Translations under genes and position numbers: made by a program
Origin: Octopus sinensis
Lineage: Eukaryota
Reading direction: 5' to 3'
DNA length: 64,000 nucleotides
NCBI RefSeq assembly: GCF_006345805.1
Contig: NC_043023.1
Coordinates: forward strand, 9,672,001-9,736,000
Notes under the pieces: generated by a model
Told to the model about the DNA's origin: nothing
Database searches by the model: none
Seen by the model: only the letters and a program-made list of their open reading frames with translations
Part shown: positions 120-32,463 of the stretch, in pieces
How positions within the stretch are numbered: position 1 is the stretch's first letter
How the letters are laid out: every line of letters starts with the position of its first letter

Positions 120-191
120 AGATCTATTCTACAATAAAATCTCTACTATTAGACAGGGAACGTTCGAAAATCTGTACAGTTTGCGCACTCT
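120..191 (+). CDS. aGPCR exon: leucine-rich repeat ([25 protein letters not shown])
   Basis: ttcttacAG acceptor and GTAAGT donor; 72-bp phase 2-2 exon typical of single-LRR exons; LxxNxIxxIxxxxFxxLxxLxxL pattern. Confidence 0.85.

Positions 192-32463: not shown

Follow-up and report, generated by a model that had tools for sequence, protein, structure and literature searches.

An octopus adhesion GPCR locus combining leucine-rich repeats, a three-finger (LU) module and a GAIN domain: probably an inactivated member of an expanded mollusc family

Which receptor is encoded at this locus of Octopus sinensis, how its ectodomain is built, and whether the copy can still work are the questions raised by a stretch of 64,000 nucleotides (the window; NC_043023.1, positions 9,672,001 to 9,736,000 of the forward strand). 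The preliminary description had proposed a hidden adhesion G-protein coupled receptor (aGPCR) in which leucine-rich repeats (LRRs), a three-finger (Ly6/uPAR-like, LU) module and a GAIN domain precede an intact seven-helix domain (7TM). The results support an aGPCR with LRRs and an LRRCT cap, a genuine LU module, GAIN and a canonical GPS. Read jointly, they make it likely that the gene belongs to the ADGRG clade and to a mollusc family expanded in octopods, that it represents a short form with the order LRR-LU-GAIN, and that it is probably a pseudogene.

The gene was reconstructed by joining exons with AG/GT borders and matching phase; Pfam searches followed, and extra exons were sought by tblastn with relatives. 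The main locus for comparison is a 102-kb stretch of O. bimaculoides (CM046629.1:736744-838441, hereafter L001). Of the 15 phase-compatible exons originally described, 14 hold, with AG/GT borders, consistent phase and an open frame, while the fifteenth (32085-32466) is unreadable in one frame. Thirteen lie within 120-24611, have AG/GT borders throughout and agree in phase, yielding an open 601-aa frame once joined; the fourteenth, at 29421-29493, is phase-compatible with this chain, and the sound exons together span 120-29493. They are as follows.

120-191, + strand: exon 1 in the window, one 24-aa LRR (AG/GT, 72 nt; LRR_8 at residues 2-54; 86% nucleotide identity to L001 77049-77113)
2082-2153, + strand: exon 2, second LRR (AG/GT, 72 nt; 90% nucleotide identity to L001 78164-78225)
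2501-2658, + strand: exon 3, start of the last LRR and LRRCT cap, CxC...C...C (AG/GT; four-Cys cap pattern; match to variable lymphocyte receptor A)
5132-5223, + strand: exon 4, first part of the LU module, ending TDC (AG/GT; second family Cys replaced by Tyr at 5170-5172)
6700-6883, + strand: exon 5, remainder of the LU module, ending CCTRNVCN (AG/GT; family Cys 8 replaced by Pro at 6808-6810 and Cys 9 by Thr at 6835-6837)
9531-9759, + strand: exon 6, start of GAIN (helical subdomain A), adjoining the LU module (AG/GT; junction in P0014/P0019; alignment to 6v55_A)
10687-10858, + strand: exon 7, GAIN (AG/GT; tblastn with relatives; collinear with L001)
13344-13490, + strand: exon 8, GAIN (AG/GT; tblastn with relatives; collinear with L001)
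16875-17003, + strand: exon 9, GAIN subdomain B (AG/GT; tblastn with relatives; collinear with L001)
18700-18849, + strand: exon 10, GPS, CVYW...C...CSCNHL|TSFAVLM, cleavage site and start of the tethered agonist (Pfam GPS 3.2e-17, residues 423-467)
20780-20913, + strand: exon 11, TM1 (Pfam 7tm_2; AG/GT; match in L001)
22468-22591, + strand: exon 12, TM2 (Pfam 7tm_2; AG/GT; 94% nucleotide identity to the O. bimaculoides exon)
24470-24611, + strand: exon 13, TM3 (Pfam 7tm_2; AG/GT; 93% nucleotide identity to the O. bimaculoides exon)
29421-29493, + strand: exon 14, TM4, intact (tblastn with P0023, P0001 and P0010; AG/GT and phase; syntenic with L001 89756-89967)

Across these exons the domain order is two LRRs, an LRR start with the LRRCT cap, a Cys-rich module, GAIN, GPS and TM1-TM4, so that the extracellular series given in the preliminary description, from the LRRs and cap through the module ending CCTRNVCN to GAIN and a GPS reading HL|TSFAVLM, is present in full. 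Pfam recognises LRR_8 (3.4e-13), GPS (3.2e-17, 63 bits) and 7tm_2 (1.1e-16, covering only positions 4-115 of that model) in the window model. Its LRRCT entry gives no match there; the cap in exon 3 aligns with residues 140-223 of variable lymphocyte receptor A (3m19_A), its capping region, at E 9.5e-9. Residues 196-472, forming GAIN, align to the Gpr126 ectodomain (6v55_A, E 1.6e-25), and the closest solved structure for the window protein is ADGRG6 (E 1.5e-44). The two junctions flagged earlier as critical, 5223/6700 and 6883/9531, are both phase-correct, and the latter recurs as the same junction in the O. bimaculoides RefSeq models P0014/P0019. The window does not include the start of the gene, which lies upstream; about 13 further LRRs, an LRRNT and a signal peptide are present in the orthologue.

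A protein search with the window product retrieves about 47 octopus proteins (O. sinensis, O. vulgaris, O. bimaculoides), most of them named 'adhesion G-protein coupled receptor G6-like'. These are 50-78% identical to the window protein, none being near-identical, and beyond octopus proteins the search reaches vertebrate ADGRG2 at about 1e-36. L001 contains three family genes in tandem (about 300-21000, 30000-58000 and 67000-91700). Exon for exon, the third (77049-91737) is collinear with the window at 84-94% nucleotide identity, far more than chance would produce, and blocks of its introns match at 85-90%; over 543 codons the two share 78% amino acid identity, with dS 0.23 and dN/dS 0.52. The O. 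bimaculoides annotation splits this gene into two pieces (P0014/P0019 and P0023), and an assembly gap removes part of exon 7, where the P0019 model ends. There is thus a good case that the window gene is the orthologue, or the closest paralogue, of the third L001 gene. A C2H2 zinc-finger gene at 99836-100879 of L001 has no counterpart in the window.

The intact seven-helix domain is the part of the preliminary description that fails. Whereas TM1-TM4 are sound, the exon for TM5-TM7 is broken, and two further features have to be considered along with it.

32085-32466, + strand: exon 15, broken, for TM5-TM7 and the proximal part of the tail (in-frame TAA at 32113-32115; six frameshifts left uncompensated; 382 nt long, where the orthologue has 386 nt)
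36404-36492, + strand: exon 16, C-terminal tail, SVSDYEWEVKKAETTF (83% nucleotide identity to L001 91640-91737)
24695-24962, + strand: ectopic copy of TM5-TM6, c1, with 27 nt of upstream intron (268 bp; 93% identical to 32058-32324)

Exon 15 lies in its proper order, 3' of the TM4 exon, and has a donor at 32467 (GTAAGT), the family frame ending at 32466. Its TM5-7 sequence is still recognisable despite the stop and the frameshifts. Alignment with the intact O. bimaculoides exon contains eight gap columns, two of which compensate each other, leaving the six frameshifts. Several of the lesions alter the length of a short run of A or T by one base; others are of a different kind, namely the change GAAGCTGCAG -> GAAG-TGCAG and a cluster of substitutions that creates the TAA. 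The stop formerly taken as the gene end, at 32463, belongs to a shifted frame and is a frameshift artefact; a further exon follows at 36404-36492. In this exon 16 the family stop TGA has become CGA (36454-36456), and 12 residues are added past the conserved ETTF. The loss of the stop after ETTF can be followed at 36440-36456; the C-termini of paralogues read ...AETTF, ...AETDL, ...TETNI or ...AETNF, which resembles a class I PDZ-ligand motif.

The ectopic copy c1 offers no rescue. Inserted 83 bp past exon 13 at a (CT)n microsatellite of intron 13, it is truncated in TM7 by a (CTAT)n run, carries one frameshift of its own (-2 in an A-run), and is both out of order and phase-incompatible with exon 13. 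No counterpart of c1 is present in the corresponding O. bimaculoides intron. Stops or nonsense result when exon 13 is spliced to c1, and likewise when exon 14 is spliced to an acceptor inside exon 15, and no combination of exon 15, exon 16 and c1 yields an intact seven-helix domain. A secretin-type 7TM in a single frame is therefore missing, and the window copy is not a working 'hidden' receptor as assembled. Just 3' of c1 lies one of two copies of an interspersed repeat (25072-25400 and 21132-21460), 95% identical over 329 bp.

As assembled, the copy cannot signal because TM5-7 contains a stop and six frameshifts, the terminal stop is lost, and three family cysteines of the LU module are gone. 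The probable explanation is that it is a recently inactivated pseudogene, the first 14 visible exons of which have yet to decay. Several observations speak against this. All frame-breaking lesions fall in the last two exons, the 1.88 kb of upstream coding sequence being clean, and under uniform neutral decay the chance of six lesions all falling within 17% of the coding sequence is, by simple arithmetic, ~2e-5. The dN/dS against the O. bimaculoides gene is the 0.52 given above, not 1. The number of changes at otherwise invariant family sites in the window copy (17/108) does not exceed that in intact paralogues lacking a sister sequence in the set, such as P0005 (24/132), a comparison that sister sequences confound. 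A run of 100 Ns at 56890-56989 is an assembly gap, and it marks the window as part of a scaffolded draft, which is relevant when the frameshifts are weighed.

The strongest competitor to inactivation, though itself unlikely, is that the gene is intact in the animal and that the TAA, the frameshifts of exon 15 and perhaps c1 arose by misassembly or faulty polishing of a gapped draft rich in repeats; a working short-form receptor, LRR-LU-GAIN-7TM, would then exist at the locus, a consequence equally unlikely. The confinement of the lesions to the last two exons with 14 clean exons before them, the single-base changes in A or T runs, the 100-N gap and the dN/dS of 0.52 all fit such errors, and the duplicated TM5-6 sequence could misdirect read mapping during polishing. 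Against them stand the lesions that are not homopolymer slips, the position of one frameshift and of the stop-codon loss outside the duplicated stretch, and the lack of anything of the kind in the 1.88 kb of other exons. Moreover, no protein more than 78% identical occurs in a database holding three octopus RefSeq proteomes and transcript assemblies; such an absence is what would be expected if annotators called no protein at the locus.

Improbable, and distinctly more so than assembly error, is expression of the locus as a truncated product comprising LRR-LU-GAIN and TM1-TM4, a shed or decoy ectodomain whose upstream exons are under selection. Exons 1-14 are intact, dN/dS is below 1, and with an intact GPS the release of an N-terminal fragment would still be possible. 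A RefSeq isoform of O. bimaculoides, P0019, likewise stops after early GAIN, though that model ends at the assembly gap. GAIN cleavage products, however, require a folded GAIN domain and normal membrane insertion, and the premature stop lies in the penultimate exon near the last junction, so that the transcript may or may not escape decay. The LU domain has also acquired a free Cys. Inactivation thus remains the preferred reading of the window copy.

The Cys-rich module, ~90 aa long, is carried by 22 retrieved family proteins with 12 conserved cysteines. The window module keeps nine of the 12, including positions aligned to all core cysteines, the second, eighth and ninth being replaced by Tyr, Pro and Thr. 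Three-finger proteins have core and accessory cysteines, and the positions lost here are accessory. The eight core cysteines and the C-terminal CCxxxxCN expected of an LU domain are therefore all found in the window, while three of the four accessory cysteines are lost and one Cys is left unpaired.

Taken singly, the window sequence stays below the Pfam threshold (Toxin_TOLIP, E 0.2), as do single octopus LU domains in general (best Activin_recp, 6.6e-4). A profile built only from octopus sequences gives weak matches that are exclusively three-finger proteins, among PDB entries (Activin receptor, LYPD1, toxins) as well as in Pfam. A full HMMER scan of 1.84 billion representative proteins with this octopus-only profile (A2) returned 31 proteins, among them LRR-module-GPS-7TM receptors in Argonauta hians and the gastropod Nucella lapillus, scallop and whelk proteins that are small and have a single module, and a sea-cucumber protein (P0142) with four repeats (E 1.9e-5 library-wide), which itself scores above the Pfam cut-offs for CD59 (48 bits) and Toxin_TOLIP (39 bits). 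A word-indexed search with the LU profile added just four octopus fragments. When the sequences found by HMMER were added, the widened profile (A3) matched solved human LYPD1/Lynx2 (6zss) at E 1.8e-7 with 12 of 12 cysteines aligned.

Structure prediction points the same way. The LU domain of the closest paralogue, 71% identical to that of the window, was modelled with AlphaFold2 from the widened alignment (pLDDT 72.6, pTM 0.64), and Foldseek places LYPD1 first for this model (TM 0.70/0.73, rmsd 2.8 A, E 3.2e-4). The best 50 matches are three-finger proteins without exception (Lynx1, LYPD6/6B, uPAR, snake toxins, TGF-beta receptor ectodomains). A first model, from 17 close paralogues, was poorer (pLDDT 63.6, best Foldseek E 0.035), and its top 20 matches were also three-finger folds only. 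NCBI names one octopus fragment 'ly6/PLAUR domain-containing protein 1-like'. The SUPERFAMILY entry SSF57302 is the snake toxin-like superfamily. Table S3 of Ritschard et al. (2019) assigns this entry to residues 136-215 of one member, unmentioned in the text (PMC6408891). By profile and by model, then, the module is a true LU/three-finger domain, as the preliminary description had supposed for the window, and it is of the LYPD1/Lynx2 type. The family domain is likely to contain six disulfides in the LYPD1/Lynx2 manner. That it is instead an unrelated disulfide-rich spacer merely mimicking the CCxxxxCN ending, as might be argued from the failure of every octopus member to reach the cut-off of any Pfam LU model and from the poor first AlphaFold2 model, is very improbable in view of the iterated-profile match to LYPD1, the library-wide match to the Pfam-validated P0142, the second model's uniform three-finger matches, the retrieval of three-finger folds only by even the poor model, and an SSF57302 assignment that comes from an independent InterProScan run.

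The ectodomain varies in length across the family. Long members (P0001, P0002, P0004, P0005, the Nucella protein P0145, and P0136) have about 190 residues between LU and GAIN. In P0024 Pfam detects HormR (PF02793, 30.4 bits), and the Nucella protein aligns with the HormR-GAIN part of the Gpr126 ectodomain. The segment before HormR gives weak Pfam SEA signals in two of nine members (best E 3.7e-4), and a profile of the LU-to-HormR linker found nothing meaningful among solved structures. One long member, P0136, is encoded by an uninterrupted 3.5-kb ORF on an intronless 4.2-kb contig, which is most simply an assembled mRNA and thus places the LRRs, LU and all that follows through 7TM on one transcript.

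In the short forms, comprising the window gene, its O. bimaculoides counterpart and O. vulgaris P0011, LU is joined straight to GAIN. The first two L001 genes keep the SEA-like/HormR exons, whereas the third, the counterpart of the window gene, does not have them, and tblastn for SEA and HormR in intron 5 finds no coding relic in either the window or O. bimaculoides, while the same queries find the exons of neighbouring paralogues. Because long members, Nucella among them, have HormR and the SEA-like segment, the ancestral layout was therefore probably LRRNT-LRR-LRRCT-LU-(SEA-like)-HormR-GAIN-7TM, as judged from sequence. The suggestion that LU sits where Ig and HormR normally do consequently suits the window copy, in which LU abuts GAIN and neither Ig nor HormR is present, but not the long forms, in which LU precedes the SEA-like segment and HormR. 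In the relatives P0026, P0135/P0148 and P0153 alike, this LU module follows LRRCT; among them are one O. sinensis model with three tandem LU modules, one O. bimaculoides member ending in a Death domain and another that NCBI names ADGRA3.

The preliminary description had further suggested a lineage-specific and hitherto undescribed receptor class. The architecture is not confined to octopus, as the Nucella lapillus protein P0145 shares it, and LU-bearing relatives occur in Argonauta as well as in Nucella. Nor had the class gone undetected: the octopus 'ADGRG6-like' proteins in RefSeq, about 47 in number, correspond to the octopus-specific aGPCR expansion that Ritschard et al. (2019) designate group 3, with reported expression in axial nerve cord, suckers and skin (PMC6408891). 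By homology, synteny and tandem clustering the window gene belongs to this group, one O. bimaculoides member being collinear with it and many others 50-78% identical; it differs from other members in its broken TM5-7 exon and in having no protein on record. The group 3 tables list two LU-bearing relatives (A0A0L8FLR8 and A0A0L8HDZ7), whereas for group 3 only LRR (5/22 sequences) and Death domains are reported and the LU module is unmentioned (PMC6408891).

LU domains are otherwise known from proteins that are secreted or GPI-anchored and from the extracellular part of receptor kinases of the TGF-beta family, and a 2019 review of LU domains lists only secreted, GPI-anchored and TGF-beta-receptor contexts (PMC6600238). 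A literature search for aGPCRs combined with LU/Ly6 found no paper discussing the LU module, and the module is absent from a 2026 aGPCR review. Thus both the gene family and its LRRs have already been described in print, and RefSeq and UniProt list the proteins; what is probably new, given that no paper was found to combine the two, is the LU-bearing aGPCR at the level of the family, the window copy itself being an ordinary and probably dead member. An LU module in an aGPCR ectodomain, conserved from a gastropod to octopods and present in dozens of octopus copies, would add a new ligand-binding module to the aGPCR repertoire. As a small and easily expressed domain, it offers a handle on the ligands of an octopus-expanded receptor family whose reported sites are suckers, skin and the nerve cord of the arm. 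The window copy adds little besides evidence of birth-and-death turnover in the family.

Among known receptors, ADGRG6 (GPR126) and ADGRG2 provide the closest solved GAIN and 7TM domains. The order (SEA-like)-HormR-GAIN-7TM is common to ADGRG6 and the long family members, and the GPS/tethered-agonist pattern T-x-F-x-x-L-M is shared by ADGRG6, ADGRG2 and the family. The N-termini differ, the family having LRR and LU in place of CUB and pentraxin, and the short form in the window is also without SEA and HormR; none of CUB, pentraxin, SEA and HormR was found by Pfam in the window model, which does not qualify as an ADGRG6 orthologue. Like the family, ADGRA2/ADGRA3 (GPR124/GPR125) have N-terminal LRRs capped by an LRRCT and then a single small beta-rich module; they resemble its long forms in the HormR-GAIN-7TM that follows. 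The module after LRRCT is, however, Ig in ADGRA2/ADGRA3 and LU in the octopus family; Pfam finds no Ig match in the window model, and there is no HormR coding sequence between exons 5 and 6. No ADGRA chain appears among the solved-structure matches listed for the family GAIN and 7TM. A derivation of the family from ADGRA was considered and rejected, since its GAIN and 7TM are closest to ADGRG6/ADGRG2. With LYPD1/Lynx2, LYPD6/6B and other LU proteins the family shares the fold and the 12-Cys framework, including the extra pair in loop III and the CCxxxxCN end. Unlike those proteins, the family has its LU domain inside a GPCR ectodomain, as a module between LRRCT and GAIN or SEA.

How an intact member would work can be proposed by analogy with aGPCR biology, to which the window copy contributes a sequence motif only. 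The LRR arc and the LU domain may together capture an extracellular partner. GAIN would cleave itself at HL|T, and the N-terminal fragment would be held in place until pulled off or shifted, whereupon the tethered agonist TSFAVLM could activate the 7TM. To judge from the sequence, PDZ scaffolds are probable docking partners of the ETxF/L end at the C-terminus. Lynx proteins modulate nicotinic receptors. An LU domain of LYPD1/Lynx type might conceivably act likewise as a built-in 'prototoxin' on Cys-loop receptors, either nicotinic receptors or the nicotinic-like chemotactile receptors of octopus suckers. This is a long shot, suggested by the fold relationship, the reported tissue pattern and this action of Lynx proteins. 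If true, adhesion-GPCR signalling would be linked to chemotactile or cholinergic sensing, and the octopod expansion, short forms included, would reflect diversification of that interface.

The DNA around the exons is AT-rich, with many microsatellites and SINE-like repeats. One SINE-like element occurs in many copies on both strands and contains spurious ORFs (for example 9179-9424, 18006-18275, 20168-20464, 26390-26668 and 27895-28158, with further copies at 29114-29375, 39828-40184, 54501-54824 and 60835-61260). These copies account for the inflated introns of the window gene, which spans 36 kb against about 15 kb in O. bimaculoides. Intron 7 holds a decayed mariner/Mos1-type transposase in three frames (11622-12650, + strand; Pfam HTH_48 3e-08, Transposase_1 7.5e-20). 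Very long microsatellite and low-complexity tracts, for instance runs of the (CTAT)n type and of trinucleotides, lie at 3900-4700, 9780-10330, 17000-17740, 43100-43950 and 49770-50520 and yield long spurious ORFs.
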